A stretch of DNA of 63,179 bases, the filler included, from Guillardia theta CCMP2712 (lineage: Eukaryota > Protista > Cryptophyta): assembly GCF_000315625.1 (NCBI RefSeq). It is 5 parts of 5 records of this genome, joined end to end, with 100 filler letters (N's around TTAATTAATTAA, not from the genome) between each part and the next. Parts side by side here need not be neighbours in the genome. Positions count along the whole stretch, not along the records: positions 1 to 26,633 come from NW_005434378.1; 4 more parts are not named here. One strand, 5' to 3'. This document shows positions 2,445-26,633 of the stretch, in pieces (position 1 is the first letter of the stretch; each line of letters starts with the position of its first letter). The notes beneath the pieces are model-generated. The model did not search any database. It was not told where the DNA came from and saw nothing but the letters and a program-made list of their open reading frames with translations. Position numbers and translations under genes: made by a program.

Positions 2445-3588
2445 CATAGCGTTGTCGGGTCAAGGAACTTGCTGACAATTGGGATTTGTACCAGATCCAG
2501 GCGTTTTCCAGTACAAAATTGTGTGTGAGTAAAAAATCCAAGGATTGGAAGGTTTGAAAATCCATTTCCAGCCTGCACGTTCAACGGCAACCAGGGGTAA
2601 TTGAGAGCTCAGATAAGTAAACAATCGTTCCTATTTGTCTTTGGATAGGGTCACATAGCGCTTGTATAGTGGAGTAATGATTCGTACCAGAACCTGATGG
2701 GTAGGCGTGGTAGTATTTCAAATGATTCGAACCAAACGGACGCGACAGGGGGGTGGGGGGTAGAGGTATTGGTCTGGTACTGTAATGGGTACCTTATAAA
2801 ATACATTTAGCAGAGGGGGTCTCCCTCCCCATCTCCCTCCCCTCAACACTTGCGCATCCCTGTCCTTCCCTGTTCATGAAGCTCAGACTCTTGTCACACC
2901 TTCCCTGATGACCCTCAACTTTCTTTGACGCTTCTGTCTGCCTTGTCCTTCCCCAACATGCTGGAAACTCAAACTCTGAAACCATGCGCATGACTTGACT
3001 AGCACTGTGTTTCTCGGTTTGAATGCGGGAGGAAAAATGATACATGGAGTGCAACTAAGACGTTCATGTTTCAACCTCATAGATACAAGTAGTATTGCAT
3101 TGGTAAATGACTGTCATTTTACTTCTCATTGACACAGCATCAAGAACTTGCTTTGGATCGATCATTGCTTGGAAAGTGTCATTTTTCAGACAGAACTTCG
3201 AGTTTATCTATATTCTGTGTCCATCCACACGATCAAATCTGCTTTGATACACTTTTTTAGCAATTCTTAAGTTGAGCACATAAAAGGCCATGAAAAAGAT
3301 ACATGTTTGCAGACGCTCTCCTCCGCCTGATCCCCTCCTGCCCTCCACGAACCTTCTCTTCTCTTGGACTCCTGCTCCTCTACCATTCATCGTCCTCTCC
3401 TTTTGTGTGAGTTGCTCTCGGACTAGGGGAGGGGAGGAGAAGCCGGGAAGGGAAAGGTGAGCCTGGGAGGTATTGATATGCTGATCGCGAGAGAGTAGAT
3501 GCCAGAGGAGAGACGGTTTACTCAAGACCACTACCGAGGAAGGGAGGAAGGCGACGAGAGAAAGGAGAAAGCTTCGGGTAGAGACGGC

Positions 3589-3882
3589 TTACTTGATACC
3601 ACTAGCGATAAAGGGATGTTTCAGAGCCTCCTGTGCTGTCATCCTCGTGCGGAGATAGATGTCGAGGCAGCGGTTGAGGAAGTCCCAGATCGCATGTTTC
3701 TCCTGCCCTTGCATCCCGCATCCGCGCTCAGGGAGCTTGACAAGGTCCGCCATGTTTGCTTCAAACCGCGGGCATAGCTGAGATGCTCTTCCAATGGTCC
3801 GAACTGAATGGCATCAAGTTAGCAACCTCAGGCTTTTCGCCTCCATATCACCCTCATTCTCATCCTCAGGATAATAGAACTT

Positions 3883-3918
<36 letters not shown>

Positions 3919-4161
3919 AATTTTACCTCAACTTTGAGCTTGAAATCTTTAATAACATCCGGAAGGAGCGAGAGCTGGCCGTAGAATCATCAGAGGGCAA
4001 GCTGTAGCCGTTGCTCTTCGTTACTGGGAAACTCTTGCTCATTGACCCTGACTTTGTGCTGCGGCGTGATGAACTCGATTGACAGTGTCCTTTGGAAATA
4101 TCTTCTCTGCCAGCCCAAAGTCCACAAGCAAGTACTTGTTGTTCCTTCTGTCGTAGAGGAA
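3589..4161 (-). pseudogene. CDC7: Captured, truncated and frameshifted CDC7-like kinase fragment inside element 1
   Basis: Manual minus-strand translation gives FLYDRRNNKYLLVDFGLAEK (from 4161; Cdc7-type subdomain VIb-VII) and DFLNRCLDIYLRTRMTAQEALKHPFI..* (ending 3589; subdomain XI). A GT-AG intron at 3926-3804 contains (GTTGTC)n and a GCTAAC branch point. Confidence 0.75.
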
Positions 4162-4541
4162 GGATCAGTAGGGGTGGGACAAACAAACAAACAAAGCAAA
4201 AAGCAGTACGAGGACAAACAATCAAACCAACAATCATGGGTCAACAGTCCATAGGGTCAACAGGTTGACAAACAGACAAACAAACAAACGAACAGGTGGG
4301 CTCCGCTCTATTGAATACTTATTGAACAGGTGGATGCCTTTCCAGGTAATTGGGTAAATTTCCCGGGGCGGGCTTGATTTTTCCACTTCCATGGTTTGAG
4401 TGGGGATGAGGAGATTAGTCCTTTCAAATTTTCCGAAGGGGTTTTCAAAATTCCGAAAGTTTATCCTTTAATTTCAATATTATTTATTAATGTTCAAATA
4501 TTCAAAACATTCTATTGAAATTTTCCCGCCAATTGATCATC

Positions 4542-7147
4542 ATGCTGCCCCCACAGCGACAGATCACGACATCTCCTGCCCGCAATGCTCCCATCATCAA
4601 CTTCAAGGATCTCGACCTGTTGTCATCACCCAAGGTCCCTGGTTCAACGTGGTACTCTTCTTCATCTGAAAATTTTCTGGGTAGATTGATGTGTATGTTA
4701 TAGGTATGATGCGTTCATTGCCGCCACAGGGCCAGGGCATGGACCCCCTCCCTACATTTTCGCACCGCAAGCATACAAGTGGGCTTTAAGTGCGACTCCT
4801 GTATTACACGGTGATCACTTTCCATTGGATGCCCAAGCAATTCTGGGATTTCAGACAAGGGCAGCTCTGGAAGGCTACTTTGACAAGGATAGTAAGAGTC
4901 CAGACGTGATTAGATTACTCAACGACATGGGTGCCAATCATAACGATTTTTGGAGAAAATCTGTGCTGGGCAAAAGTTTGGCCATATCTGCTATACATGC
5001 CGAAAAGAATGAAGAGCTCAAGGCAAAAATTGCAAGTCTCGAGCACCAGATTAAAGTACTTCAACAGGAAGTCAAGAACTTGAAAGCTGCTAATGAATCC
5101 TCTCCTCCAAGGCCACGCTCTGCATCTACTATTGACTTCAGGGAAGTGATCAAGTCAGAGGAGCAATGCAACATTTGGGTAGAAGAATTGAAACCGTACT
5201 TTGAACGGTTTGCCAACCTCACAAAAGAAGTCACAGAAATAAACTATCTCCCATGCTCTGAAGAACATAAGGATGAGCTTTTCTATTATGCACTAGCGCA
5301 ATTGACTTACGGCAGACGTCTTGGACAAAAGAGATTGTTCAATTTTCATTCGTTCTGCAAGGGATTTCTTGGGCGTGAAGAGTTGAAAACAAAACTAAGA
5401 GAGACTTTTGACAACAACGCGAGTATAAAACGAATCTTTGTTCACGTGTGCAAAACCTCTCTTGTGAATCATATGGAAGATGTTAGCAAATCGATCATAT
5501 CCAGTGGAGTGCCTATTCGAAAGTTCGACAAAGTTTGTCACGCTTTGGGCCGCTCGATGTGTCCGAGTGTCAAAGCACTTTGCGCGAGAAACCGAGAATA
5601 TAAGCGCATGATTGAAGACGAACTTGGTGTGTTTCTGATGGAGAATGGAAGTGGGTTGGACTTAGAAAGGACAGTAGAATTGATACACGACGACAATGCA
5701 GAAGTTTTCAAAGATGCAGAAAACCTATATTTACATATTATTTTCGACGGTTGTAGAATAACTCAAACTGGTAAATATCAGGTATACTTCTGTGCAATAC
5801 TCTCACCGACGGAGGATATCACGGACCCTAGTATGTTGACGAAAGCGAAACGCCAGTATTCCTTCTGTGTGATCGACGGTCACGACACGATTGAAAATAT
5901 CGATGCAAATTTTATCAAAGTCTATGCACCTTTTCTTGCCGTGTTCTTGAAAGGATCAGACGGCGAGATTACACCTGGAATTCATATTTTTGAAGGCAGA
6001 GCGAAATTTGGGAGACAGCGCAGCCGGAACGGTGAAGTTCCGCACAGAATTATTCATGTGATCGGAGTGATTCGGAGCGACATGAGTGGGAGCTGGAAGA
6101 TAATGAATCATGGGGGACTCCATGATCCAATTGGGGCATGTTTCCTCTGTGATCAACCTTCTTGTCAAAGACATATTTATTATGAATTGGTGGTTGTTGA
6201 TTCAGATATTGCATGGGATGATATTCCGACAAGATTTCAAATGCACCAGGATACTTTTGCAATGGTGAATGGACTTCGCAAGGTAGATGGCAACGTTTTG
6301 AACTTGGAACAATATGACAATCTGGACAGTCTGGGCATCGATGTGGAGAACGTTGTGATCTGCTCCATGCACATGGTGTTTCGTGTATCGATTGCATTTG
6401 TCTTGTATGTATGCAACACCGCGAAAGAAAACAAAACGTTTCCTGTTGTGCAGAGAATGCTGGCAGAAATCAATATTCACGTCAAAGATTCAAGATCGTT
6501 TGCAATGCATGATATGCCTCAATTGATCGGTGAAAGTACCAAAAGGTTCCTCAAGGCATTTCCTGACTTGATAGTTGCTGCCCGGGCCAAAAATGCTGAC
6601 TTGTGGAAAGATCTCTGTGAAAAATGGGCATCAATAGTCTCAAGTGTTCTTCAGACGGACATTAAGAAAATGAGTCAAACAGAAATTGATTCTTTTGCTA
6701 TGCGATGTAATGATTTCTTGGCAAGATATGTCCTTCTTACAGACAGACTGGAATACTGCAGAGGGATCTACCTACATTTCCTTGCGGTTGGACATGTTAC
6801 AGATCAATTCAAAAAATTTGCAGAAAAGAAGATTCCTCTTGGTCTTCTGAACATGAGCGCGATGGAGAAGAGGCATTTGGTGAGTTCAGACTTACACTGC
6901 TTCATCATTTCTAAAACATTGAGCATTTGTGTAGGAAGTTTCTAAACCATCGTATCACCAAGGGGCAACGGCAGCATGTGGCTCAAAGCGAGGCAGGGAG
7001 CAGGAACCAAATGGCCAGGAAATGTCGTCTGACCAGAAGAGATTAGCCAGTACTATGATCTATCAGGCTGCAGGCTCCTTCAAGAACATATGTATGCTGT
7101 GCCGAAACATGCAACCTGTCTGTACATGTCGGCATCATGGCTCTTGA
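4542..7147 (+). CDS. DDE transposase of the CMC (EnSpm/Mirage/Chapaev)-Transib/RAG1 group; predicted exons 4542-4680, 4730-6879, 6935-7147 (about 833 aa)
   Basis: ORF 4825-6945 shows the motif order IIFDG ... RSDMS ... CFLC ... CSMH ... YLHFLAVGHV ... LGLLNMSAMEKRH. Two short GT-AG introns (49 and 55 nt) keep the frame by manual check. The last exon ends in CMLCRNMQPVCTC. Confidence 0.85.
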
Positions 7148-7285
7148 CCTTTAGTACTGTACAACTCATTGAACACGCTATGTTATAAACCTACTACCGT
7201 GTTATTCAGGAGGATAAGTCCAAATTTCTTCTCTTGATGCGCCTAACAGTACAAGTCTGTTGACCTACAAGGGATGAAGTCCATG

Positions 7286-8377
7286 TCAGCTTATGATGTA
7301 ATATTCATCAACAACTTTCATCACCTCAATGAATAAGCTTTCACTCTTGACAACAAAAAAAATAGGAAATTTGATGTAAATGGCAACACCTGACTCGCGA
7401 ATTACAAGAGGTGCATCAATTGTTGGGATTGCAAGATAATTTCGTTTGAACATCTCCTGCCTCCCAACTGTTTCAGGCAGAATCCAACAATAGTGCATCC
7501 CATTCTTACGCTTGCATTCGACTTGTCTCTGAAAAGCAAGCGGCAAGTCCTCAATAATTTGTCGCACGCTGACATTTTTGACTTCAAATCCACGTTTTCT
7601 CACGCTGGAAGGATACCCCAGCGCTGATCTGTATGCAAGCCAAGTAAACATTTCCCTCTCTATTGATACCCAGATTGTTGTCGCACATGGCGTTCGTAAA
7701 ACTTCTGAGGCAAGACAAGGTCTGAAATTCCCCCACCGTACAGATTCTCGCCTCCGATTGTTTTCAATAAACATGATCCAACCAATGACGAAGAAAAGTT
7801 GGCCCGACCTTGGTATATCGTATTCTTTACGAAATGCATCTATTCTTTCTGCTGCATTCTCTCGCGGGTAGGTATTTCCAGTGCGAGGCGTCAACCGTAA
7901 AGTAGTTGGAGCAGAAAATTGTGGAAATTCTATACAAGCCTGCTCAAGGATGTCTTCATGTGGCACCTCATCAGTATAGATAGATTGAAGGCACTGGTTT
8001 TCGCCGAGACCATCCACATATTTTGTAAATTGATGAGAATTGTTAAGCCCGCCCTCATGACTGACTCTTTGCAGCAAAGTTTTCCTATACAACCACACGA
8101 TAGTACATGTCTCTTCCTTGACATGCTTGATGATCCCTAGTTGCTCATGTGAGTCAATATCTCGAAAGATCACAGCGGTCCCTGCAGCGAACCGGTGATC
8201 GTCCGAGTCCTCCACAGCTCGAGAATGGGGCCTCTGGGTCTGACATATTTGCAGTGGGATCGTGAGTTGGGGCGGAGGCTGCTTGTTTTCAAGACGCTCA
8301 TCAGCAGATTCTCGTATTCTTGCCTCTCTTTGTCTTCGCCTAAGCTCTCCTGCAGCTGATGCATCACGTCTGCGCAT
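7286..8377 (-). CDS. Transposon accessory protein with a BAH-like domain (363 aa)
   Basis: Intact ORF convergent with the transposase. The segment AGTAVIFRD..QLGIIKHV..CTIVWLYRK..ENQCLQSIYTDEVPHEDILEQACI follows the BAH pattern (G.I ... V.W.YR ... NE.F.S...D.V....I). Confidence 0.65.
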   Translation of the reverse strand: MRRRDASAAGELRRRQREARIRESADERLENKQPPPQLTIPLQICQTQRPHSRAVEDSDDHRFAAGTAVIFRDIDSHEQLGIIKHVKEETCTIVWLYRKTLLQRVSHEGGLNNSHQFTKYVDGLGENQCLQSIYTDEVPHEDILEQACIEFPQFSAPTTLRLTPRTGNTYPRENAAERIDAFRKEYDIPRSGQLFFVIGWIMFIENNRRRESVRWGNFRPCLASEVLRTPCATTIWVSIEREMFTWLAYRSALGYPSSVRKRGFEVKNVSVRQIIEDLPLAFQRQVECKRKNGMHYCWILPETVGRQEMFKRNYLAIPTIDAPLVIRESGVAIYIKFPIFFVVKSESLFIEVMKVVDEYYIIS

Positions 8378-8806
8378 TGCAAATGCAGGGAGGAGGGAAG
8401 AGAGTGGCCTTTTCTTCTCCAGTCTGTGACTTGAAGTGATTCACATACCTCCGAGAGGGTAGGGTCCATGCTAATTTGACCCCGTCCGAGACCCCGCTAG
8501 CTCAGGGAAAGAGGTGGGTCCAAAGCATTGATGTTTGAACTTTGAAATGTAGACCATAAGCCGTTGTGGTACAAGTTTTCCTGTGGTACTTCAAATAGTA
8601 CCACCACAATTGTACCGTTGGTACAGATATTTTCTACCAGGAAGTACCCTACCCCCTCAAACAGGTCCCAACAAATTTGAATCAGCTCCCAGCCGTCTGA
8701 CCCACCCCAGACCCCAACTGCCATTTGCTATTCACATATGTGGAAGGATACCCCCACAGAAAACTATTGAAAACCAGAGGGGTCAGTTGAGAGCGACAAC
8801 GCTATG

Positions 8807-10406
8807 GGTCACGGCCGCCCGGAGAGATCAGGCCCCCGGCCAATCTCCGGACACTTAGCCTCCTGGCGGGCCTCCAGGGGGTCTGAGGCGGGGCTGAAGG
8901 CTGCAGTCGGTCTACTGACGGGCCCGGCCGGCAGGATCGGTCGAGAAACAGGGGGGTCAAGGGAGGTTTTCTTCCCCCTGGGAGAAATGTCCTATGGGTT
9001 TTTGGATCTGCGATATAAAAAAGTCTTGTCTCGGTCACGTGATGTGTCACGTGACCGGTCAGGTGAGCCTGTCAGCCGGGTCACGGCCCCTGTCAGCCGG
9101 CTGACATGTCACGGGCCTGCTGACACGGTCCGCTGACCGGTCACGGCCGCCCGGAGAGATCAGGCCCCCGGCCAATCTCCGGACACTTAGCCTCCTGGCG
9201 GGCCTCCAGGGGGTCTGAGGCGGGGCTGAAGGCTGCAGTCGGTCTACTGACGGGCCCGGCCGGCAGGATCGGTCGAGAAACAGGGGGGTCAAGGGAGGTT
9301 TTCTTCCCCCTGGGAGAAATGTCCTATGGGTTTTTGGATCTGCGATATAAAAAAGTCTTGTCTCGGTCACGTGATGTGTCACGTGACCGGTCAGGTGAGC
9401 CTGTCAGCCGGGTCACGGCCCCTGTCAGCCGGCTGACATGTCACGGGCCTGCTGACACGGTCCGCTGACCGGTCACGGCCGCCCGGAGAGATCAGGCCCC
9501 CGGCCAATCTCCGGACACTTAGCCTCCTGGCGGGCCTCCAGGGGGTCTGAGGCGGGGCTGAAGGCTGCAGTCGGTCTACTGACGGGCCCGGCCGGCAGGA
9601 TCCGTCGAGAAACAGGGGGGTCAAGGGAGGTTTTCTTCCCCCTGGGAGAAATGTCCTATGGGTTTTGGATCTGCGATATAAAAAAGTCTTGTCTCGGTCA
9701 CGTGATGTGTCACGTGACCGGTCAGGTGAGCCTGTCAGCCGGGTCACGGCCCCTGTCAGCCGGCTGACATGTCACGGGCCTGCTGACACGGTCCGCTGAC
9801 CGGTCACGGCCGCCCGGAGAGATCAGGCCCCCGGCCAATCTCCGGACACTTAGCCTCCTGGCGGGCCTCCAGGGGGTCTGAGGCGGGGCTGAAGGCTGCA
9901 GTCGGTCTACTGACGGGCCCGGCCGGCAGGATCCGTCGAGAAACAGGGGGGTCAAGGGAGGTTTTCTTCCCCCTGGGAGCATGTCCTATGGGTTTTTGGA
10001 TCTGCGATATAAAAAAGTCTTGTCTCGGTCACGTGATGTGTCACGTGACCGGTCAGGTGAGCCTGTCAGCCGGGTCACGGCCCCTGTCAGCCGGCTGACA
10101 TGTCACGGGCCTGCTGACACGGTCCGCTGACCGGTCACGGCCGCCCGGAGAGATCAGGCCCCCGGCCAATCTCCGGACTGACTTAGCCTCCTGGCGGGCC
10201 TCCAGGGGGTCTGAGGCGGGGCTGAAGGCTGCAGTCGGTCTACTGACGGGCCCGGCCGGCAGGATCCGTCGAGAAACAGGGGGGTCAAGGGAGGTTTTCT
10301 TCCCCCTGGGAGAAATGTCCTATGGGTTTTTGGATCTGCGATATAAAAAAGTCTTGTCTCGGTCACGTGATGTGTCACGTGACCGGTCAGGTGAGCCTGT
10401 CAGCCG
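8807..10406 (+). repeat. 332-bp satellite, about 4.8 copies
   Basis: Same unit as 1-2444. Confidence 0.98.
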
Positions 10407-12802
10407 CATTACGTTCGCTTATAGCTTTAGTTAATTCTCGATCCTGTCCTTCTGGTACTAATCATGGACACGGCTCTAATTGCAATTTGTACCAGTCCTT
10501 CCCCCCCTGATGGCGCCTGGGGGTCTTCAGCCCTTGCCTGGAGTAGACCCCACCCTCACTCTCCCATGGGAAAAGAGTAGGTCGGGTGGGCGACTTGGCT
10601 GGGGCAAGGGTAGGTTGTGAACCTTTTATTCCAAGTATTTGCATGCAGAAATTTGTATCGGCGGCGTGCTATTCTTAGATTCAAACTGTACTGCATGACG
10701 ACAATAAAATCAATTCTACACGCCTTCGTGGTACAAGAATAGTACCGAAAATCCTATCGACCCACCCATGCTTTTCTCTGTTGGATACAGGAGGCATAAC
10801 CCCTGGTCAGAGGCGTGTATTCAAAATTTGAACTTTAACGTAAGGTACCCACCCTTGCTCATGTGTCATAATTCCCTAAAACAGGAGGGTGGTCGATACG
10901 GCACTCAATCTTGGGATCAGGGGGTGGGTGGTAAGGAATCCCCAACCCATCCCTCCCTCTCGATGCATGATGAATGTTGCCCATCCAGCGACCATCAGGC
11001 TACTGAAAGATGCCAAGACCAACATGGTGACAAAGGTCAAACATGAGAATCAAAGATGGTGGGTTTGAGTGGTATGCATGCTCACTGTGCAACTCTGATA
11101 CTTTAGTGACAGATCCTGCTTCCCGGCGAGCAGTCATCGTGCATGGATCAGGATGCCCAAAGCTCTGCCCTTTTCAACGCTGCACTTGCACATATTACAT
11201 GTGGTGATGCACTCAGGTTGGCATTGCTACTCCACATACAGGTTGATGACAGACGTTATATTGTCTAGATTGTTTAGAACCCCAATTCCAGCTTGAACAA
11301 CATTGTTGAAGACGTGCAAACTGTTAGCGGCAATCTGTTTCTCAAAAACAGATCCCATCACGAATCACGGTGAGCTGAGATCAAGTGAAGATTGATCTTC
11401 TAATGTTTGTGTATCAGGTAAGCATCGTGCATCCACATGAACAAGCAACACAGCATTTTTTTCCTTGGCACCTTCCTTCCTAGCAGAACAATGAACACAT
11501 GTAAGATATTACATGCTCGTGACGATATCGACAGCAGACAAGTTTTACGACAAAAGAAAATTATGTAGGGATGATCTAAGTGTATCGAATACTTGCTGTT
11601 GGTGCTCAACATGTGGAGAAAAGACGATTTGAATGAATTCATGACAAATCATGACAGTGGATCACTTCTGAAGCAACGTATCTCAATGTTGCATACATAG
11701 CTTGACTTCATATCCTTACATCGTGAGAGTTGACAACCTGTATGGAGTGAGCTTTTCTGCGTCACATCATGCTGAGATCTGCATGCAACTTTCCAGCGCA
11801 GTTGCAGAGTCATGTGCACAGGAGTTCTCTTGCAAGTAAACTAATTCCAAATCATGCTTAATGAAATGCGTACCGTCTGTTGATGCCTTGACCGAGAACA
11901 ATCGTGTTACAGAGTATTGCTACTCGCTGCATGCGAAGCTGCTACTGTCTACAACACTCTAGAGTTCTGAACATCATATCAGTCCACAGCATGCAGGTTG
12001 CAAGGTTCCGAACGAACCGCGCTTCAAAGCAGGGCCATGAGCTTTGAATCATGCTTGATAGAACACGTACACTCAGCTCAGTTCATGCTTTCGTGACCCT
12101 AGTTGGATGTTCATACACCTTGCCAATGCCCGTGAAACATGTTGCCTCTCCCATTCAAATGTATACTGTAAATCTGAGGCACAAAATTTCTAACATCAAA
12201 TATCTTGAATTATGCAAAATCAAAATCCTTGATTACACTATGATGAGGCAAGAGCAGGATGCTCGTTGTCCCATCTTGTTTGTGAGGGCACGAGTGAAGG
12301 TTGAGCTGCTTTGACAAACAGCACTGGATATCTAGTGCAATACTTTACATCTCAAGCATTTGTTTATTGATAAAACATAACATTGTCGACTATGCGAATG
12401 AAAAATCATCACAGCAACACTTGGATGGTGCTTGATTCTGAACTTGCAAGATTAGATTACGATAATGATGATTGTATTCACAAAAGCAACACAACGACCG
12501 TGTTATCAAGATATCTCATCGACATTAACTTCGAATCTTGATGGTCTATCCTTCTTCGTCATTGATTAGCGTTGTGCATATCCCTGCACCATCGCGAGAG
12601 GGCTGAAGGGAGGGGGGAGGGGCTCGGGGGGTCTACCATCATAAAATGCTGGACTCTTAAAAGTATTGTAATTTGTACCATTAAAACAAATAAATTAGTA
12701 TTACAGGACCCACCCCTGTGCATTTCCCTCTTCAAACTCTACCACGCCTGTATCAGAGCCCCACAGGAAAAAGAACCCCAAAACCAACAAGCGAACGTAA
12801 TG
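10407..12802. mobile_element. Non-autonomous or decayed 2.4-kb TIR transposon (element 2)
   Basis: Perfect 14-bp TIR CATTACGTTCGCTT (10407-10420) / AAGCGAACGTAATG (12789-12802). 2-bp CG duplication (10405-10406 / 12803-12804) with the satellite in phase. No long ORF. Confidence 0.93.
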
Positions 12803-12950
12803 CGGGTCACGGCCCCTGTCAGCCGGCTGACACTTCATGTCACGGGCCTGCTGACACGGTCCGCTGACCGGTCACGGCCGCCCGGAGAGATCAGGCCCCC
12901 GGCCAATCTCCGGACACTTAGCCTCCTGGCGGGCCTCCAGGGGGTCTGAG
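12803..12950 (+). repeat. Partial 332-bp satellite unit
   Basis: Continues the unit interrupted by element 2. Confidence 0.95.
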
Positions 12951-15279: not shown

Positions 15280-15782
15280 CTTGGGCAAGAGGACAAGTCT
15301 TCCAGACGGATCGCAGCATCACACTGCTCATCCCGGTTTTGTTGCAGCTTGGAAGGCACTCTACTGCTAAAAATAAACTAAAAATAAAATTCCTCAATAA
15401 TGTATGGCATTGGGTTGAGAGCGTTTTGTAGGCAGTGTGTGGAGGATGAAATTCGTGTGAATGATTCTGTACTTTTGTATTCTTTTAATAGAATTTCAGG
15501 GGTTTTGATAAGAAAAGCCCTCCAGAAATGGAATCTTCCATCGAGATTTGAATCCTCTGTTACATGCTCGTAATTCTATGCTGAACTGCGCCCGAATTCA
15601 ATCAAGATACGGCCTAAGAAGTTTGACGTGCATTTAACCACCTTCAATCGCCCATCGATATAAAAACGAGGTCCTCAGGCTTGGGCTTTGTAAGTAAACT
15701 TGCTCGCAAAGACAAATCAACACACGATTCTGTCCTTAGAATCCCTCCCCTCCGTCGTCCTGACCCCCACCACCCCATCACC

Positions 15783-16380
15783 TCTCCAGTATCATTGAAT
15801 ACCTCTCCGCGACCCCTCGGCTCAATCGCCAACCTGGCATTTTGTCAGGAGGCTCATAACCTGTTTCCACGGAATTGATCGGAAATTCTCTCCAAAAAGT
15901 CCTGATTATGCCTCTTTGCTTTGGATCGGCCTGATTGACATCCTTTGGGCATATTCCGGGCCTCTCCGGCGAGCTCCAGGCCCGTGCGGGCCGTCCGGGC
16001 CCGTGGAAATAGGTTATGAGCCTCCCGACAAAATGCCAGTGTGGCGCTTGAGCCGAGGGGTCGCGGGGAGGTATAAAATGATATGGGAGAGAAGCCGGGA
16101 AGAAAAAACTTGCAACGTACTAGTTATACGTATAGGATTTTTTTCGAGGTCGAAACTCAACTGGAAATTGAGTTGAAAATCCAGGGTTTTTCTACCTATA
16201 CACCAGTTCATGTACTAATTGATCGGAAATCTCTCCAAAAAGTCCTGATTATGTCTCTTTGATTTGGATCGGCCTGATTGACATCCTTTGGGCATAATCC
16301 GGGCCTCTCCGGCGAGCTCCAGGCCCATTCCGGGCCGTCCGGGCCCGTGGAAACAGGTTATGAGCCTCCCGATAAAATGC
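15783..16380. repeat. Second repeat family: direct copies at 15873 and 16218 (345 bp apart) plus an inverted partial copy at about 15783-15872
   Basis: aattgatcggaaat...gagcctcccga.aaaatgc occurs twice; 15799-15872 is the near reverse complement of 16001-16074. Confidence 0.9.
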
Positions 16381-16849
16381 TATATATACTGAGGCGGGCC
16401 CGCAGGGCCCGCCTTACAAAAAACTCGTGACGTCGGGAGCCCCACTGCAAACATACCCCCAGATCCCCTCCCACCTTCCATCTAAGGTCATGGAGAGGCT
16501 CATTGGCCTCCATCTAGACTGATCTGATACCTCGCCTTGTGTCATCCGACTCATATATATACTGAGGCGGGCCCGCAGGGCCCGCCTTACAAAAAACTCG
16601 TGACGTCGGGAGCCCCACTGCAAACATACCCCCAGATCCCCTCCCACCTTCCATCTGAGGTCATGGAGAGGCTCATTGGCCTCCATCTAGACTGATCTGA
16701 TACCTCCTTGTGTCATCCGACTCATATATATACTGAGGCGGGCCCGCACGCCTTAGAAAAAACTCGTGACGTCAGGAGCCCCACTGCAAACATACCCCCA
16801 GATCCCCTCCCACCTTCCATCTGAGGTCATGGAGAGGCTCATTGGCCTC
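16381..16849 (+). repeat. Third satellite, about 172-bp unit, about 2.7 copies
   Basis: tatatatactgaggcgggcccgca...gtcatccgactca repeated near 16381, 16554 and 16725. Confidence 0.93.
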
Positions 16850-16856
16850 AATCCAG

Positions 16857-18202
16857 TGGGAGAAATGTCCTATGGGTTTTTGGATCTGCGATATAAAAAA
16901 GTCTTGTCTCGGTCACGTGATGTGTCACGTGACCGGTCAGGTGAGCCTGTCAGCCGGGTCACGGCCCCTGTCAGCCGGCTGACATGTCACGGGCCTGCTG
17001 ACACGGTCCGCTGACCGGTCACGGCCGCCCGGAGAGATCAGGCCCCCGGCCAATCTCCGGACTGACTTAGCCTCCTGGCGGGCCTCCAGGGGGTCTGAGG
17101 CGGGGCTGAAGGCTGCAGTCGGTCTACTGACGGGCCCGGCCGGCAGGATCGGTCGAGAAACAGGGGGGTCAAGGGAGGTTTTCTTCCCCCTGGGAGAAAT
17201 GTCCTATGGGTTTTTTGGCGGGCCTCCAGGGGGTCTGAGGCGGGGCTGAAGGCTGCAGTCGGTCTACTGACGGGCCCGGCCGGCAGGATCCGACCTTGTC
17301 AGCCTGCTGACATGGGAGGTTTTCTTCCCCCTGGGAGAAATGTCCTATGGGTTTTTGGATCTGCGATATAAAAAAGTCTTGTCTCGGTCACGTGATGTGT
17401 CACGTGGCCGGTCAGGTGAGCCTGTCAGCCGGGTCACGGCCCCTGTCAGCCGGCTGACATGTCACGGGCCTGCTGACACGGTCCGCTGACCGGTCACGGC
17501 CGCCCGGAGAGATCAGGCCCCCGGCCAATCTCCGGACACTTAGCCTCCTGGCGGGCCTCCAGGGGGTCTGAGGCGGGGCTGAAGGCTGCAGTCGGTCTAC
17601 TGACGGGCCCGGCCGGCAGGATCCGTCGAGAAACAGGGGGGTCAAGGGAGGTTTTCTTCCCCCTGGGAGAAATGTCCTATGGGTTTTTGGATCTGCGATA
17701 TAAAAAAGTCTTGTCTCGGTCACGTGATGCGTCACGTGACGTCAGTGAGCTGTCAGCGGGTCACGGCCCCTGTCAGCCGGCTGACATGTCACGGGCCTGC
17801 TGACACGGTCCGCTGACCGGTCACGGCCGCCCGGAGAGATCAGGCCCCCGGCCAATCTCGGGAGTCCGGACACTTAGCCTCCTGGCGGGCCTCCAGGGGG
17901 TCTGAGGCGGGGCTGAAGGCTGCAGTCGGTCTACTGACGGGCCCGGCCGGCAGGATCCGTCGAGAAACAGGGGGGTCAAGGGAGGTTTTCTTCCCCCTGG
18001 GAGACCGGTAGTATGGGTTTTTGGATCTGCGATATAAAAAAGTCTTGTCTCGGTCACGTGATGTGTCACGTGACCGGTCAGGTGAGCCTGTCAGCCGGGT
18101 CACGGCCCCTGTCAGCCGGCTGACATGTCACGGGCCTGCTGACACGGTCCGCTGACCGGTCACGGCCGCCCGGAGAGATCAGGCCCCCGGCCAATCTCCG
18201 GA
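16857..18202 (+). repeat. 332-bp satellite, about 4 copies with several small indels or rearrangements
   Basis: Same unit as 1-2444; more variant copies. Confidence 0.95.
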
Positions 18203-19331
18203 AATTATAAATCGATTTATAAAACAGATAAAAATTATGATTTATTCGCAAAAGTTGTCTCCTCACGTTTCATTACAATTAAGTGCATGCGTCGATTACT
18301 TGGCATTGTCTGAGGTGAAGCTTCCTCCTATCAGGTGCTTCAACACCCTCCTTTGGCTCTTGTGTGCCGATGCCAGCATTGTTACTTTGCCGCGCCTCCA
18401 TTGACGGTGTCAGGCTTGTCAAATTTGACTATGCCTTTCAAATGACCTGCTGCGGTTACAAGCAAAGAAGTGTGGCTCAAGTGCACAGATGCTTAGAGCC
18501 TCGGAATGCATCCCTGGAGAGGACAGCAACAGCTACAATAAGGACGACGTAGGAGAATCATGAAGAAGACAGCAAGAACTTAGGACTCGTGGATGGCAGC
18601 AGGAGATAAGCGAGTCAGCTTATATCAGTCCACGACAGGACAGCAGATGACACGGTGGCAGGATATGGCTACGCTCAAAGGGAGATTGGAAGTATCACCC
18701 CTGAAGTCATGGACATCGGAGAACAAGGGGTCTGATCAAAGAAGACCGTGGCAGTACTATCATGATCATCTTAGCGGAGGACTTACAAGGGCAACGCACG
18801 AGACCACCTCCAAGCTTGACTCTAGCGGAGACACAGGACCTGTCAAGGTCAAGGGAGCAGCTACATCAACTTCACAGAGAGCGTTGGATGGGAATCGAAG
18901 ACCTCGTCATGTCAAGCCTATGACTCTTTCTCAGGGAACCCTCAAGGTACGGAACCAGGCCTCGGACCGGTCGAAGAATCATATTGCAGTCGGTGCTATC
19001 ACTGTCTACTTCGGGTGTCATTGCCACTGTGTCACCGTCTGTGGAGAGAAGGTTACTGGGAACTTCAACAACCCCTCCTTTCTGTAGCCAAGAGACGCTA
19101 CCCCTGGCTCCTTCCTGGAAGCTATAAACCTTTCGTGTGTGTGCCACGATTGTTTGAGACGTCTTTGTGTGCGTCATCTTGTCTTGTGTGTGTGTGTGTG
19201 TGAAAGAAATAAAAGAGAGTTAGATCTCCTTCTGTTTCACCGCTTTCCCTCTTAGTAGAAAAATCCAACGTTAGTTCTTGTTGAACTGCGCTTGAAGGTC
19301 CTCTCGAAAATCTTCGAGGTGTGACACACGC

Positions 19332-20141
19332 ATGAATACCACATGGCGAAGCGTAACAAAAGATGGTGACATGGAGAACGATGAAGGTAAATGTACCAGT
19401 ATAAACACGATCATTGCCAATTACATCGGTATCTTGGAGAAAATTAAAGAAAGGAACCAGGCAACATTCAAGGTTCTCAATAAAGCGATCGAGTTCATTA
19501 TGGAGCTTGAAAATCGTCTTTATAGAAGACTAAACATCAAGGCGGCCAAGGAAGAGCCTAAAGTACTCACAGAAGCTCACGATAGATTGAAGCACAACAA
19601 GGTCAGGGCTTGTCTGACAACGGTGATACAGAATGAGCTTGAAAGCACAGACAACATCTTGCTTATCCCACTCGCTGAAATTTTCGACGGATTTGATGAG
19701 CGAAACCAGCTCGGAACCATCGTGAGTATCGTGGACGATGACGAGAGAACGGACAGACAAGAGCGCCGCTATAACCCAGACAACAACCCTATCACCAGCC
19801 GGTACACGTATATCCTTTCGAGAATCAAGAAGAAGTTTGTCCAACTTCGACGTGCGGCACGCAGTGTTATCGACAACATGTATCAGGTGAAGCATTATGG
19901 CATTGACGGCATAGTGATCAGGTCTTACCAAAGCTACCAGAAAAGCATCAAGCCGCACACCCCTCTGGCACCGGACGACATCCTTGCCACGAATGAGTAC
20001 GGACCCGCCACAGTATTGGTACAGCTTTGGAATTTCTACGATATGAAAGGCAACAACGCGGTAAAGGAATGGCTGTCCAAGTACATCACCGCAAGCATCC
20101 GTCATCACCCACGGGTTAAAGAACCTTTTTGTCCCCATTGA
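19332..20141 (+). CDS. Hypothetical protein (269 aa), possibly retroelement-associated
   Basis: ATG-initiated intronless ORF with protein-like composition; no motif recognised. Confidence 0.45.
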   Translation: MNTTWRSVTKDGDMENDEGKCTSINTIIANYIGILEKIKERNQATFKVLNKAIEFIMELENRLYRRLNIKAAKEEPKVLTEAHDRLKHNKVRACLTTVIQNELESTDNILLIPLAEIFDGFDERNQLGTIVSIVDDDERTDRQERRYNPDNNPITSRYTYILSRIKKKFVQLRRAARSVIDNMYQVKHYGIDGIVIRSYQSYQKSIKPHTPLAPDDILATNEYGPATVLVQLWNFYDMKGNNAVKEWLSKYITASIRHHPRVKEPFCPH

Positions 20142-20150
20142 GAAATACGA

Positions 20151-20726
20151 GTGGGATACAGGCGGTTTCCACAACTACCTGCTACGGTACAGTCCACGGT
20201 CGTTCTGTACACCAAAGAGCTTGTCATGCACACGTCACAGGCGCTGAGGCAGAAGGCCGTTCCAGATCAAGTGAACAAGACGCTGCTTTGTGTCTACATC
20301 TATTTGAAACATACAAAAGATCTACGTGCTGTACCACGACAAGATGTACATGAGCCCGCAGCAAGAGTTTTACCTGTCGTTCATACTGAAGAACTTCCTA
20401 CCCATATCCGGGTTCAGCCGTGTTGCGATACAGCAAATGCAATGAACATAATGAGGATCTTCGAGCACATGATTTGGTCGACGGTGAATGACAGGGAATT
20501 GGACCGTAACACCCGCCGGCTCGAGAAGTTGTTCCACTATCACGCGACGATCATGAGGCAAAGATTCTATGAGTACAGCGAGTACACCATCAACAACATA
20601 CCAAGCATCGTCCAACGTGACACTCTAACACAGGATAATGCCGATATTTGGAGCTGTGATGAACATGCACCCCCAACGTGCGAAAGAGCGCATCCCAGAA
20701 CTGGGATTTGGACTCTTATTAGTTGA
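20151..20726 (+). CDS. Hypothetical ORF (191 aa), possibly a continuation of 19332-20141 after a stop codon
   Basis: Same reading frame as the upstream ORF, starts 10 nt after its stop, non-ATG start. Confidence 0.3.
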   Translation: MGYRRFPQLPATVQSTVVLYTKELVMHTSQALRQKAVPDQVNKTLLCVYIYLKHTKDLRAVPRQDVHEPAARVLPVVHTEELPTHIRVQPCCDTANAMNIMRIFEHMIWSTVNDRELDRNTRRLEKLFHYHATIMRQRFYEYSEYTINNIPSIVQRDTLTQDNADIWSCDEHAPPTCERAHPRTGIWTLIS

Positions 20727-20776
20727 ACACCACGGAAGGTCAGTTGGAATGCAGATTCGTTGGCGACCCACGTGAC

Positions 20777-21045
20777 TAGCCATCTTGCGAGCCGTGGAGA
20801 CAGTTCTGGTTGGGTGCTGAGCCTCACCAAACTGTGGTGATCGGTTCTTACTTGGAAGCGCCTGCCTTAGAGGTAGTAGGCGAAATGTTTCAAACTCTCC
20901 TTGAGCGCCAATAGCTCGCGTTCATATGTAGAGTAGTTGCACTCTGCGGCAATTAGTTTCCCATAGAATGCAATCGGGTATTCAGTGCCGTCTTCATCGC
21001 GTTGATGCAAGGCCGCCCCCATTGCAAGGTCGGAAGCTGTCGTAG
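20777..21045 (-). pseudogene. Ty3/Gypsy pol RNase H relic
   Basis: Manual translation: TTASDLAMGAALHQRDEDGTEYPIAFYGKLIAAECNYSTYERELLALKESLKHFAYYL*GRRFQVRTDHHSLVRLSTQPELSPRLARWL. This is the Gypsy RNase H signature with one stop codon. Confidence 0.9.
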
Positions 21046-21498
21046 CGCTGCTTTAGCGACTGCAAGGCTTGTGAGGTTGTGTGTACAACAGTGCTGCGTG
21101 CCAAGGTCAGGAGAGACGTGCCGGTGACGCCATGTGTAAGAACATAGAACTCCCAATTGTACGGTATCAGTATTTCTAGGACAGATAGTCTAATACGACG
21201 CTCTCTCTTCATTTATCGTAGTAAATGTTTTGGATAGCACAAAATTACCAAGTTTTGCTCCATCGTGCGTGAAATTACGGTGCTGTGCAAGTGACAGGAA
21301 GCGAGCTTCAAGTCCTATCGAACAGCAGTAACCTGCCCCTCTGGTTAAGTTTTAGAAAGACCATACCTAAATGGTATAATGGGGTAAGTAACACAACGAA
21401 TGTGATATGAATGCCTTGGACTTGTGAACCTGACGAAATACAAGCATGTAAGAATATCTTCAGAGAACATCAAGCACAAAAATTTCATCAGCTTTCTA

Positions 21499-22521
21499 TC
21501 AACATGAGCTCTTGTGTCTTCGAAAAACCATGGATGTACGTGTAAACCAATCATAATTGTCAGAGGCCTTGCGGAACATTCGTTCACTCCGAAAATCTCT
21601 GAAATACTTCAGATCTCTAAAAATTGCCTCAATGTAGTCGTTGCCATGATTATTGATGTGATTATGACCACCCTGTCCAAGAATTGCCCAACTCAAAACA
21701 ATTCCCTTGCAATTGTGCCGATGCAGATTTCGTATTACAACACCCTCAAAACGACTTGGGACGTGTTCCCCTACCTCTAACGACACTACCCATTCCTTAA
21801 TGGGAAGATTGAATGGGATCGTCAAATCTAGAAATCGGACAAAGCCATTGGTGTACTCCTGTACATTGCCAGCACCGTCAAATGCCTGATAGTCAAGTTT
21901 GGGAAAGAATTTCAAAAGCTCACATCCATATTGTCCAACACCAGCTCCAAAATCGTACAGTGACGTGATATTCTCAGTTAGAATCAAACGTTTCAAAGCT
22001 AGAAGCACTTGCTGTGATGCTTTTACATGGCGGGTAGGGCCAGGGATAACGTATCCTTCAGGAGTGACAATACTCCATAGCTTTCCAGGTTGTAAACACC
22101 ATCCGCCTGTGCCTGACACACTGTCATTGAGTCCAAGGCAAAGCTTACGAGATGCTGAATGACGATCATTCAACATCTTTTCTAGGAACGAATAAAGCTG
22201 TGGAGAAACTTCAAATCGAGCACTGTCTTCAATGTCGGAAATATTGTAATGCCTTGGACAATCGACCCTAGTTTGAGGGCATCCACATTTTGTTGGACAA
22301 CCCAATCCATACTCGGCAGGTCCAATCAATTTCTCGTTTATTTCCTTCAAATGCTTCAAGGAGTCAATCGTCGTACTGTAAAATTCACTCTTGTACACCA
22401 GAAAACGACTTCCATGCTTTGGCAATTTTGAGAACGCAAGAATCAGACAGAATGATACAATGAAAAAAACTGGAACAGAGTGATTACGTGCAAACCTAGA
22501 AGTAATATTGCCCGGGACCAT
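21499..22521 (-). CDS. Membrane-anchored class I SAM-dependent methyltransferase, intronless
   Basis: N-terminal TM (VPVFFIVSFCLILAF); motifs LYDFGAGVGQY, AFDGA, VVSLEVGEHVP and LSWAILGQGGHNHIN. First ATG at 22521 (the ORF track starts at a GTG, 22590). Confidence 0.85.
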   Translation of the reverse strand: MVPGNITSRFARNHSVPVFFIVSFCLILAFSKLPKHGSRFLVYKSEFYSTTIDSLKHLKEINEKLIGPAEYGLGCPTKCGCPQTRVDCPRHYNISDIEDSARFEVSPQLYSFLEKMLNDRHSASRKLCLGLNDSVSGTGGWCLQPGKLWSIVTPEGYVIPGPTRHVKASQQVLLALKRLILTENITSLYDFGAGVGQYGCELLKFFPKLDYQAFDGAGNVQEYTNGFVRFLDLTIPFNLPIKEWVVSLEVGEHVPSRFEGVVIRNLHRHNCKGIVLSWAILGQGGHNHINNHGNDYIEAIFRDLKYFRDFRSERMFRKASDNYDWFTRTSMVFRRHKSSC

Positions 22522-22848
22522 GGCACCAGTAGAGGTTTTATGGATGTAGGCTTGAATTGCGAAGTTTAGAGGGTCCTGTTGTTCGGGCACTAGGGGTTTT
22601 CAGGAAAATCCAAGCAAGTAGCATCCAGCCAGTAAGTTTGAATTTTCCGATTTCAAATTAGGCGAGATTTGAGAGGACGCATGAAAGTCAACCTAAATGC
22701 ATAGGAAGCACCTGTTACGGAATCCCCCTAAAATTTGTACCACGAAATGTTTTTTTTGGAACTGTCGATATATTCATTTTCCAGTAACTTGGGCGGGCCG
22801 AAGCCCGTCGCCAGATTTGAGCCGGCAATGGCAATGATGCCTGAAGGT

Positions 22849-23838
22849 GCCTGATCTCTCCGGGCGGCCGTGACCGGTCAGCGGACCGTGTCAGCAGGCC
22901 CGTGACATGTCAGCCGGCTGACAGGGGCCGTGACCCGGCTGACAGGCTCACCTGACCGGTCACGTGACACATCACGTGACCGAGACAAGACTTTTTTATA
23001 TCGCAGATCCAAAAACCCATAGGACATTTCTCCCAGGGGGAAGAAAACCTCCCTTGACCCCCCTGTTTCTCGACGGATCCTGCCGGCCGGGCCGGTCAGT
23101 AGACCGACTGCAGCCTTCAGCCCCGCCTCAGACCCCCTGGAGGCCCGCCAGGAGGCTAAGTGTCCGGAGATTGGCCGGGGGCCTGATCTCTCCGGGCGGC
23201 CGTGACCGGTCAGCGGCTCGGACCGTGTCAGCAGGCCCGTGACATGTCAGCCGGCTGACAGGGGCCGTGACCCGGCTGACAGGCTCACCTGACCGGTCAC
23301 GTGACACATCACGTGACCGAGACAAGACGGAAGTTTTTTATATCGCAGATCCAAAAACCCATAGGACATTTCTCCCAGGGGAAGAAAACCTCCCTTGACC
23401 CCCCTGTTTCTCGACGGATCCTGCCGGCCGGGCCGGTCAGTAGACCGACTGCAGCCTTCAGCCCCGCCTCAGACCCCCTGGAGGCCCGCCAGGAGGCTAA
23501 GTGTCCGGAGATTGGCCGGGGGCCTGATCTCTCCGGGCGGCCGTGACCGGTCAGCGGACCGTGTCAGCAGGCCCGTGACATGTCAGCCGGCTGACAGGGG
23601 CCGTGACCCGGCTGACAGGCTCACCTGACCGGTCACGTGACACATCACGTGACCGAGACAAGACTTTTTTATATCGCAGATCCAAAAACCCACAGGACAT
23701 TTCTCCCAGGGGGAAGAAAACCTCCCTTGACCCCCCTGTTTCTCGACGGATCCTGCCGGCCGGGCCGGTCAGTAGACCGACTGCAGCCTTCAGCCCCGCC
23801 TCGGACCCCCTGGAGGCCCGCCAGGAGGCTAAGTGTCC
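22849..23838 (-). repeat. 332-bp satellite in inverted orientation, about 3 copies
   Basis: Reverse complement of the unit at 1-2444. Confidence 0.97.
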
Positions 23839-26493
23839 CATTACGTCATGATCTTGAAATTTGGTCCATTTCTTCCTGAACGGGGTTGTTCGCAAACACA
23901 TCAAATTGTGGGGTGGGGTGGTCTACTACAGGTTTTAAAGTTGCTTTCTGGTACTGTTTACAAGTATGTAAAATTTCAAATCCAGTTTCAAATTGACTTC
24001 GAGTACTCCCCGGCTTCCCCTACACGCCCGACATGTCGCCATCTACACGCCGGCACGCAGTACCGAAGCGCCCTCCATGATGCATGGCGTCGGCGCATGC
24101 AAGAGCTGAAGCAACAGGCATTTGTGTTCTTCGTTCAAAGCAAACAAGTATCAAGTCTGACATGAAGAAATGGAGGTCTGAAGCAGGTGGTGAAGGAGTA
24201 TGATTGCGTAGAGGTACGTCACACCTCGATTATCGCTTCTCATGGGATTGAAGGCTGAGAATGCTGGTTTGGCATGAATGAAAAACTTGAGATTGATGCA
24301 ATTTTGGAGATGTTTGGAACAGGCAGCGTCTTCTTCTGAGTTAGAATGAAGCTGAACGATAGTTGTCAAGCCGCTTTAGTGCAAGCACCTCGAGATTTTC
24401 AAGATCTGCACTTCATGATTTGAATCATCTGTGGCGCCATGCAAGATGCCAGTCCGAATTCAAACGTCTTGAAGTTTTCATCATGATTTGCATCGCTACC
24501 TCATTATATTTTGACATTAGATAATGATGCTTCGCATGTGTAAAATGTTGGGATTACACTACAACCTTTCAGATGCATGTTCTTGTTCTAGACAAAGTAA
24601 CATCAATAGAATATACATACATGTCGTACAATTGTCACAATTATGACTATGTACAAGTTAGACTCGTGTCTGGCTGTAGATTTATTCCAAACCGCAAGTT
24701 ACACTCTCCGTCCTCTTTGGCTTTGAACTTCTTTCACCGACAGATTTATCATCTTAGCTGTGATGGGCTTGTTGCAATGGCTCTGCTTCCACTGCTCAGA
24801 GAAGTGCACTGATGCACAACGCCCGGCATTCAAGTCCAGCCTTCAACTATCAATACTTGAAAGCACGAGAGAAAACTCCTCGGCAATGGAATCGCATGAG
24901 AGAAGACTCTGAGAGAAGGAATGGCTAGTACAGCTCATGAGAGTTGTTTTCAAAAATCAACTGCAGTGCGACAGACAATTCTGGCGATCTCAATCATGAT
25001 TCAGCTTTCAAGTGGCTGATGCGTTCGCTGGCAGAGAGCTAACCTTGTCTGGAGGCAGCTGATGTCTCATGCTTTCTTCATCTTTGTTTGCCTATTCGAT
25101 TAGTTGCTTGTAAAGCTATATGTATGACCATCATGTGCACGATGCCAGGCTCAGTGCCCGGCATGGTGGAGTTGTGAATGAAACTGTTGCACGCTATCAC
25201 ATGCATAGTACCATGCTAGAGTATGTGACGTGCAAGTTCCTCATTGCATGAAATGAATGTCACCAACAGAGAGAGAGTCACATACATCTGCATACAATGT
25301 GCAAGCATCATTGGTGACGCCACTTTCTTTTGGCGTTCACCTGATTCAAATCCATCGCAAACATAGAAAAGCAACAGCAAGTATCTTCAAATCTGCTTCA
25401 CTTTCATCTCACGTAGCATTCTGGTACCAGGATGCTAGGGTGGCAACGCAACAAGGAGGATCGCATTTCCATCAAGTATTCGAAGGTTGCATCTCTCATC
25501 GCACCCTGATCCATTTTCCTCATGTTTTCCTTCTCAAAGTGTGAAAATCGCTTATATAACTAAGATACATCATCATCGAGGCGTCTCAGTGCAAACACAA
25601 GAAGGCAAGTGACATGCTTGTTGGGATAATGTAACCATGCAAATTTGAATCCTTGCCGCTCAAAACAGTATTTGATGCATATTTACACCATCACAAGATC
25701 AAGAAAGCAAACATCATCATTAACATACAGTTAAAACTATTCTCACCATGCTTCAAAGCTTCTTTGTATTCACAAGCAACTCAACGAACTCAGATTCAAA
25801 TCTTCTCTTTCCTCTTGGAATCCAAGAGTGGTTCTCAACCATTATGGATAGGTTCAAAGAGAAGTTTTCTATTCATCCACATGACAGTACACATAGATTC
25901 GAAGTCTCTCACCATTCAAATTGGTTGTCGCGCGCGAGCAAGGGATCGGTTCGCCATCTCTTGCTTGGTCGAGGGAGGGGGGATTTGGGGAAAGTGAAGG
26001 AAAGGGGTGACCCCTACCCCCTTTTTCTGTATTTCAAACTTGGAAAGCAGGGGGTGGAGGTGTCTTGTTTCCAATCACCTACCCTCGCATTCCCAAGAGA
26101 ACCTGGGGTTAAAATGGGGGTACTCATGCATGTAAATTCAAACCAGCCGTTTGTTGGGTGCGGGGGGGTGGAACACAGTTCACCATCACCCTGAAATCGC
26201 CTTAAAAGCGTATTAGAACTGTACGAGGAGCTCGAGATCCGGTACTAACAGGCTCCAAGAACAGCCTCAATTTGCCTTGTCTACCCCCCTTGAAGGACCT
26301 CACAACCACAAACGGGGTAGTGCTACACCACCCGACATTTGATAGGGGAAAGGAGGGTAGTCTAAAGCAGATATGTGTGCTTCTGGACCCCGGACGGCAA
26401 GCTATGCCCCCCTCAGGACTAATTGGATCTGGCCCACTGGGCCAGCCTTTGTACCAGAAGCATTATTGAGTAATTCAAGATCATGACGTAATG
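23839..26493. mobile_element. Non-autonomous or decayed 2.66-kb TIR transposon (element 3)
   Basis: Perfect 20-bp TIR CATTACGTCATGATCTTGAA (23839-23858) / TTCAAGATCATGACGTAATG (26474-26493). Satellite on both sides, but the flanks are out of phase and show no clean TSD. Confidence 0.88.
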
Positions 26494-26494
26494 A

Positions 26495-26597: not shown

Positions 26598-26633
26598 TGA
26601 GAGAATGTTCTGACAAAGGGGCTTTAGAATACG

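Follow-up and report, generated by a model that had tools for sequence, protein, structure and literature searches.

The satellite with a 332-bp unit that opens the window (i.e., the whole stretch of 63,179 nucleotides, filler included, from the cryptophyte alga Guillardia theta CCMP2712) is interrupted by three transposons with CAT..ATG ends, referred to as E1, E2 and E3. They represent three subfamilies within a single family of DDE cut-and-paste transposons, seen only in cryptophytes, in which E1 carries two genes (i.e., a transposase gene and a partner gene, ORF2), and the transposase is predicted to adopt the fold of RAG1. Although over-represented in the satellite, this family is not specific to it, in contrast to the original prediction, which had taken the three elements for members of a satellite-targeting family. 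A preference for certain target sequences, together with tolerance of insertions, is probably what brings this cryptophyte RAG1-fold two-gene family into the satellite; that the satellite or its chromatin is itself recognised is less likely.

Three subfamilies with one pair of genes

Genome-wide searches covered the 87.1-Mb, 669-contig assembly of G. theta CCMP2712, in which the part of the window analysed here is contig C296. The elements and their genes, with terminal inverted repeats (TIRs) and open reading frames (ORFs), are as follows:

2445-8806, plus strand: E1, 6362-bp TIR transposon, full-length, with two genes and 13-bp TIRs CATAGCGTTGTCG at 2445-2457 and 8794-8806
4590-7147, plus strand: E1 transposase gene, with introns at 4651-4702 and 6879-6933, taken from a spliced RNA contig
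7202-8377, minus strand: E1 ORF2, 371 aa after intron removal, with an intron at 7263-7322 (CT..AC joint), tail to tail with the transposase gene
10407-12802, plus strand: E2, non-autonomous, 2396 bp, with the 14-bp TIR CATTACGTTCGCTT
23839-26493, plus strand: E3, non-autonomous, 2655 bp, with the 20-bp TIR CATTACGTCATGATCTTGAA and rearranged satellite on its right flank

The consensus CATWRCGT occurs seven times in this part of the window against 1.8 times expected, a number reached in one of 100 shuffles, and six of the seven occurrences are the paired inverted ends of E1, E2 and E3, whose termini read CATAGCGT, CATTACGT and CATTACGT, respectively. All three elements are flanked by satellite, at different positions of its unit (1-2 for E1, 271-272 for E2 and 43 for E3), just as had been predicted. 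Equally, the claim that the TIRs otherwise differ and that the interiors are unrelated was borne out, with no mutual similarity between the interiors by BLASTN or TBLASTX. Common to the three elements are the terminal 8-mer and a subterminal TTGTACC only; the latter occurs eight times in this part of the window, seven of them within 330 bp of a CAT-type end, and has the same subterminal placement in L049 and L050, two elements from metagenomes.

Each type of TIR could moreover be linked to the same genes. In the window, the transposase gene and ORF2 are enclosed by the E1-type TIR. At C105:128125, an E3-type TIR is found 312 bp away from a copy of ORF2, adjoining a transposase copy, and E2-type TIRs at C320:7574-10052 enclose a fragment of ORF2 (the latter two by coordinates only), so that all three types are tied to one gene pair. 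Transposase and ORF2 lie tail to tail at at least 24 G. theta loci, and likewise on the metagenome contigs L048, L049 and L050, ORF2 being conserved beside the transposase gene throughout. Homologues of the transposase were found at ca. 25 paralogous G. theta loci, in the cryptophyte Hanusia phi (one homologue) and in metagenomes (a few), and nowhere else. The homologue on L048 has the same layout as E1 (with 48% identity in the transposase and 52% in ORF2) and keeps the conserved right end ...CAACGCTATG, reading ...GGTCAATTGAGAAAAGCAACGCTATG vs. ...GGTCAGTTGAGAGCGACAACGCTATG in E1. A search of the metagenomes for related loci with the metagenome homologue P0002 gave no match.

These findings uphold the view of E1, E2 and E3 as independent insertions of related subfamilies. 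That their shared CATWRCGT ends are a coincidence among three unrelated transposon families, as the unrelated interiors and the remaining TIR sequence would allow, is scarcely credible in view of the common subterminal TTGTACC, the tie of every TIR type to the same transposase and ORF2 family, and the retention of the terminal sequence in a homologue of just 48% identity. The family has not been described previously: searches of the accessible literature returned nothing on Guillardia transposons of this kind, nor on the 332-bp satellite. To our knowledge, cryptophyte transposons are almost undescribed altogether.

In the assembly, the E1 subfamily has a single full-length copy, E1 itself, besides ca. 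20 non-autonomous relatives of 2.79 kb with ca. 91% identity and the same ends. E1 is flanked by a 2-bp target duplication (GG, at 2443-2444 and 8807-8808), and the uninterrupted site (...GCTGACC|GGTCACGG) was found in 42 DNA contigs of run X1. Near-full copies of E2 number ca. 10 elsewhere, with 98-99% identity, and its exact terminus occurs 29 times genome-wide; the target duplication of E2 (CG) is the centre of a CCGG site. E3 lacks a target duplication, and termini of its type number 11 genome-wide. Judged from the 98-99% identity of the E2 copies, the family was active recently and may still be mobile.

Many further E2-type loci (L010-L017) are one-ended fragments of 57-540 bp that are still 99-100% identical to E2, consistent with young copies often undergoing abortive repair or deletion. 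In addition, two E2 copies (L004, at the end of C154, and L009, at C32:628002) share an identical left flank over all 30 bases compared, suggesting a segmental duplication or one locus assembled twice.

E1 itself carries a piece of foreign repeat:

3425-4162, strand not assigned: piece of another repeat family within E1, upstream of the transposase gene

This piece matches ca. 15 other loci at 78-97% identity, with contigs diverging at 4103 and 4162, and is probably nested in E1.

The transposase and its partner ORF2

E1 is expressed, both of its genes being transcribed and spliced. An RNA contig of run X4 (4589-8330) skips 4651-4702 and 6879-6933, both with GT..AG borders, as well as 7263-7322, whose CT..AC borders denote a minus-strand intron. 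A DNA contig of run X1 (4108-7144) is unspliced over both transposase introns, while among the X1 pieces listed none shows any of the three splice joints and none spans 7263-7322. Raw RNA reads of run X20, of which ca. 6% was examined, covered E1 hardly at all, which is uninformative for so small a share. When the spliced exons were joined and translated computationally, the transposase frame comprised at least 816 codons, the RNA contig beginning within the open frame on the 5′ side, and ran to 7147, with a Cys-rich tail common to the metagenome homologue P0002. Within it, a 706-aa ORF (4825-6945) is 98% identical to GUITHDRAFT_149210. The 3′ end of that gene model differs from the RNA-supported version (longer Cys-rich C-terminus), and its first exons lie outside the RNA contig.

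The family alignment revealed a set of conserved residues (P0001 numbering), i.e., D406, D517, C537/C540, C611/H614, H749/H755 and E779, which, apart from C611/H614, are invariant in all sequences covering them. Their spacings are 111 residues from D to D, 20 and 23 from the second D to the CxxC cysteines, 30 and 24 from the H pair to E, and 262 from that D to E. In mouse RAG1, the corresponding spacings are 108, 19 and 22, 25 and 20, and 254, with C727/C730 and H937/H942 as zinc residues.

An AlphaFold model of the transposase had a predicted local distance difference test (pLDDT) score of 66 overall and of 80-95 in its core. The top 49 matches of this model in a Foldseek search of the PDB were all RAG1, BbRAGL or HzTransib (best E-value of 1.8e-8), followed by Hermes with an E-value of 0.09. 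Structural superposition via VIA-align, run independently as an all-against-all comparison, placed RAG1 first (Z-score of 18.0, root-mean-square deviation of 4.8, 407 residues aligned, model residues 313-798), ahead of BbRAGL (17.6), HzTransib (12.2), the P element transposase (11.2), ISCth4 (8.2) and Hermes (6.7). Structure neighbours in the Atlas included Transposase_21 (CACTA-type) and DUF1280 clusters at template modelling (TM) scores of 0.47-0.50. Taken as a model, the transposase thus shows a RAG1/Transib-like fold along with a D-D-CxxC-Hx5H-E signature. At the level of sequence, no RAG1 Pfam family was found at E-values up to 10, the family profile had no sequence match in the PDB, and a word-based protein search with the transposase returned only the transposase itself.

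The unspliced reading frame of ORF2 spans 363 aa (7286-8377). After splicing, its C-terminus reads ...EIWTYPPE, and the consensus of a four-sequence ORF2 alignment ends in ...EIWRFPPIT; from the split in identity (52-54% vs. 21-24%), the latter tail was assigned to the ORF2s of L049 and L050, the more distant pair among the four, to which it would belong. The nearest neighbours of ORF2 in a protein language model are BAH-domain proteins (score of 0.87), on which all family-assigned matches in the top ten agree, and the stretch ...WLYRKTLL...CLQSIYTDEVP... looks BAH-like by eye. ORF2 had no Pfam match at E-values up to 10 and no PDB sequence match by profile, and word-based protein searches with ORF2 and with its profile returned ORF2 only. 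An AlphaFold model built from four sequences had a pLDDT of 31 and was not used. A BAH-like N-terminal part of ORF2 is accordingly taken as a lead only.

Insertion sites inside and outside the satellite

Flanks were read for ca. 48 loci:

E1-type: 21 loci, 5 of them in satellite (the window, C319, C137 twice, and C105)
E2-type: 21 loci, 2 of them in satellite (the window and C452) and 2 beside it (C138 and C154)
E3-type: 6 loci, 3 of them in satellite (the window, C509 and C410)

Ten of the ca. 48 copies thus lie in satellite and two beside it, while roughly four fifths of the copies lie outside, at independent sites in unique DNA whose flanks have no repeats in common. A majority of copies outside the satellite is the outcome that the original prediction had itself named as its refutation, and the satellite-targeting family is not supported as predicted; it should be carried forward only with long-read data. 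What stood of the claim is that the fraction of copies in the satellite lies above its assembled share of the genome, as ca. 21% of the copies fall in 0.17% of the assembly (452 satellite units genome-wide, by a count of satellite-specific 25-mers).

The assembled share is, however, probably 10 to 50 times smaller than the true one. Summed contig depth in DNA run X1 was 845,049 for the satellite (measured at 8807-8900) vs. 62.7 for single-copy E1 sequence, a ratio of ca. 13,000 that differs from a copy number and gives an order of magnitude only, since overlapping short contigs inflate the value. It suggests roughly 10,000 satellite units in the genome, amounting to a few percent of it, so that the satellite is far commoner than the reference assembly shows. 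Moreover, many satellite arrays stop at contig ends, which skews the assembled satellite towards parts that transposons or unique DNA anchor. The satellite is also dense in CCGG, with 9 sites per unit or 27 per kb vs. 2.2 per kb in nearby DNA (a 12-fold excess). Together with the other DNA that interrupts the arrays (see below), under-assembly and CCGG density could explain much of the enrichment without any targeting at the level of chromatin.

The insertion sites themselves point to features of the target sequence. The 50-bp flanks have a GC content of 63% vs. 52% in nearby DNA (p-value of 3e-13), and CCGG is present at six of the ten in-satellite insertion sites vs. 13% expected (p-value of 7e-4). 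Copies of all three subfamilies, i.e., E1 in the window, E2 in C452 and E3 in C410, are inserted in the same GACCGGTC within 3 bp of each other, and E1 in C319 and E3 in the window share one TCCGGA. The palindromes CCGG, GGCC, TCGA and CTAG recur at non-satellite junctions, in small numbers, and no position-specific target logo was found.

Among 28 complete copies, the target duplication was 2 bp in eight (chance expectation of 1 in 16), 1 bp in ten and absent in ten. Where the empty satellite site is known, it was GG for E1, CG for E2, one base in three cases and none in one. A fixed duplication of 2 or 3 bp was considered and rejected, as shifting the boundary by one base rescues only five of the ten 1-bp cases.

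With sequence-level preference and tolerance, these observations would be tied together as follows. The transposase would excise the element and join it to the target with a very short stagger, leaving a duplication of at most 2 bp, a course of transposition read here from sequence. The satellite would then gather copies because it offers a dense array of GC-rich or CCGG-containing sites, because its true abundance in the genome far exceeds that in the assembly, and because insertions there may be tolerated.

Several points weigh against this account. The enrichment relative to the assembly is large, and the 12-fold CCGG excess alone is insufficient for it. Of ca. 18 non-satellite sites, only 2-3 have CCGG at the junction, so that the motif preference rests mainly on the ten satellite sites. 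Non-uniform duplications are untypical of a simple staggered cut, and no known transposase profile matches the transposase, Pfam yielding only coiled-coil noise up to an E-value of 10. Finally, control repeat families disagree among themselves in their proximity to the satellite (0/25, 1/15 and 2-3/18 loci near it, by coordinates only and from incomplete lists).

Passive accumulation combined with an assembly artefact, i.e., random integration, purging from gene-dense DNA and an assembled satellite that consists mostly of anchored parts, seems an improbable explanation by itself. It would accommodate the arrays that stop at contig ends, the far greater depth of the satellite in reads than in the assembly, and the blocks without CAT-type ends and other repeats that also break the arrays. 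It would likewise suit the higher representation in satellite of the older E1-type (ca. 91% identity; 5/21) than of the young E2-type (2/21). Nevertheless, flanks are GC-rich even outside the satellite, two of the control repeat families (those with 0/25 and 1/15) are scarcely found near it, and retention alone predicts neither the clustering on CCGG nor the reuse of one 3-bp window by different subfamilies.

Targeting at the level of the region or chromatin is likewise an unlikely explanation. Chromodomain integrases are known to steer chromoviruses via histone marks, and the transposition complex might similarly be steered to satellite heterochromatin, perhaps with ORF2 reading histone marks, copies outside being off-target or in other heterochromatin. 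The disproportionate share of copies in so little of the assembly speaks for such targeting, as do the ten independent satellite insertions from three subfamilies, the position of 8-9 of ca. 27 transposase-bearing loci within ca. 7 kb of satellite (by coordinates only), the strict conservation of ORF2 beside the transposase and the BAH-domain neighbours of ORF2. Yet most copies lie in unique non-satellite DNA, the insertion sites within the unit cluster on a sequence motif, the true share of the satellite is probably far larger than that assembled, and the satellite has at least one other repeat family next to it as well. The BAH lead, for its part, has no Pfam or PDB sequence support and comes with a low-scoring model. 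Furthermore, the expressed genes of E1, together with an apparently transcribed gene in the satellite region (see below), argue that this is not plainly silent chromatin.

A more elaborate version, which we regard as quite unlikely, would see in the family a two-gene transposon organised like the ancestor of RAG. It would combine the RAG1-fold transposase with an obligatory, convergent, BAH-like chromatin reader (ORF2) that steers integration to satellite heterochromatin, as an independent functional parallel to the PHD finger of RAG2, and would place the family, as a new lineage at superfamily level, beside Transib/RAGL and CMC (see below).

Known systems and other DNA of the satellite region

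Among known systems, the RAG-like (RAGL) transposons, such as ProtoRAG of amphioxus and AanRAGL of Aureococcus, offer the closest structural comparison; AanRAGL resides in a unicellular alga and has a 5-bp duplication (PMC9435367). The best superpositions of the G. theta transposase model are with RAG1 and BbRAGL (Z-scores of 17.6-18.0 over ca. 405 residues), the spacings of its D-D, CxxC, H-pair and E residues are close to those of RAG1, and both systems have two tail-to-tail genes between TIRs. In contrast, the G. theta family lacks sequence-profile similarity to RAG1 or Transib, and no likeness to RAG2 emerged from the Pfam and PDB sequence searches with its ORF2, which is not predicted to be all-beta and has BAH rather than Kelch proteins as language-model neighbours. 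Its target duplications are 0-2 bp instead of 5 bp, and its TIRs start with CATWRCGT instead of a CAC heptamer plus a second, nonamer-like element, only the CA being common.

Transib (HzTransib) shares a DDE core with RAG1-like fold (Z-score of 12.2), a pair of zinc-binding motifs and ends that begin with CA, but it is a single-gene transposon with 5-bp duplications and CAC-type TIRs, and no sequence match to it was found. The CMC superfamily (CACTA/EnSpm, Mirage and Chapaev) makes short target duplications of 2-3 bp; in the G. theta family, eight of the 28 complete copies have 2 bp and the others 1 or 0 bp. It resembles the G. theta family in subterminal repeated motifs, in a CxxC after the second D and in a C-x2-H motif. 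It differs in that Transposase_21 gave no match at E-values up to 10, in ends that read CACTA instead of CAT..., and in the irregularity of the duplications observed here. We know of no solved CMC structure for comparison, and the G. theta family may have an affinity with this superfamily. Chromoviruses and centromeric retrotransposons, in turn, share an over-representation in satellite and a possible chromatin-reading accessory protein; they are retrotransposons with demonstrated readers and most copies in the target, whereas in G. theta most copies lie elsewhere and the reader is a lead.

The family shows how a clear predicted RAG1/Transib fold with its zinc-motif signature can be missed by sequence profiles. 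As G. theta is a culturable model alga, it could serve as a usable system for studying target choice by RAG-type transposases and the roles of their partner proteins. For annotation, it follows that ca. 25 G. theta gene pairs listed as "hypothetical protein" are transposon genes.

The satellite itself occupies the following parts of the window, as delimited via Tandem Repeats Finder (TRF) except where stated:

1-2444, plus strand: satellite with 332-bp unit, 7.3 units, ca. 63% GC (TRF and composition)
8807-10406, plus strand: satellite, 4.8 units
12803-12950, plus strand: short satellite piece separating E2 from the block that follows (not from TRF)
ca. 16857-18202, plus strand: satellite
22846-23838, minus strand: satellite in inverted orientation
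26494-26600, minus strand: rearranged satellite, with unit positions 102-63, 31 bp of filler and then ca. 52-20 (not from TRF)

Units are 97-99% identical at 1-2444, 8807-10406 and ca. 16857-18202 (TRF), and the GC content of ca. 63% compares with 42-48% in the interrupting blocks. The unit at 8807-9138 is rich in short palindromes (CCGG nine times, GGCC eight times, GTCACGTGAC twice, and CAGCCGGCTG). To the right of E3, the satellite resumes at unit position 102, not 42, and ca. 40 bp of satellite is present on both sides of E3.

Two further blocks interrupt the satellite:

12951-16856, plus strand: block without CAT-type ends, with a GT61-like ORF and a 173-bp tandem repeat
18203-22845, strand not assigned: mosaic block without CAT-type ends, combining unique DNA with pieces from two or more other repeat families

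The first block contains a single-copy ORF of 497 aa (13786-15279) that matches Glyco_transf_61 (PF04577, E-value of 5.8e-9 via Pfam). As 58-68% of the words of 12951-15500 are present in many RNA-like runs, this seems to be a transcribed gene inside the satellite region. The 173-bp tandem repeat at 16381-16853 is part of a second repeat family (TRF and genome search), which forms long arrays elsewhere (C170, C114 and C282), often no more than a few hundred bases away from the 332-bp satellite.

Across the mosaic block, the orientation of the satellite switches; the left edge of the block lies at unit position 46, beside the TCCGGA hot spot, and one TTGTACC lies 110 bp from its right edge. A truncated relative of the family may lie within the block; alternatively, the block may mark an inversion. 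An ORF within it (21499-22590) was considered as a relative of ORF2 and rejected, since comparison revealed no relationship.

Another element without CAT-type ends adjoins the satellite in C137. At 16856/16857 in the window and at L032:4944/4945 in C137, two different non-CAT sequences meet the satellite at the same phase (...|TGGGAGAAATGTCC), which may reflect another hot spot for insertion or a place where arrays end naturally.

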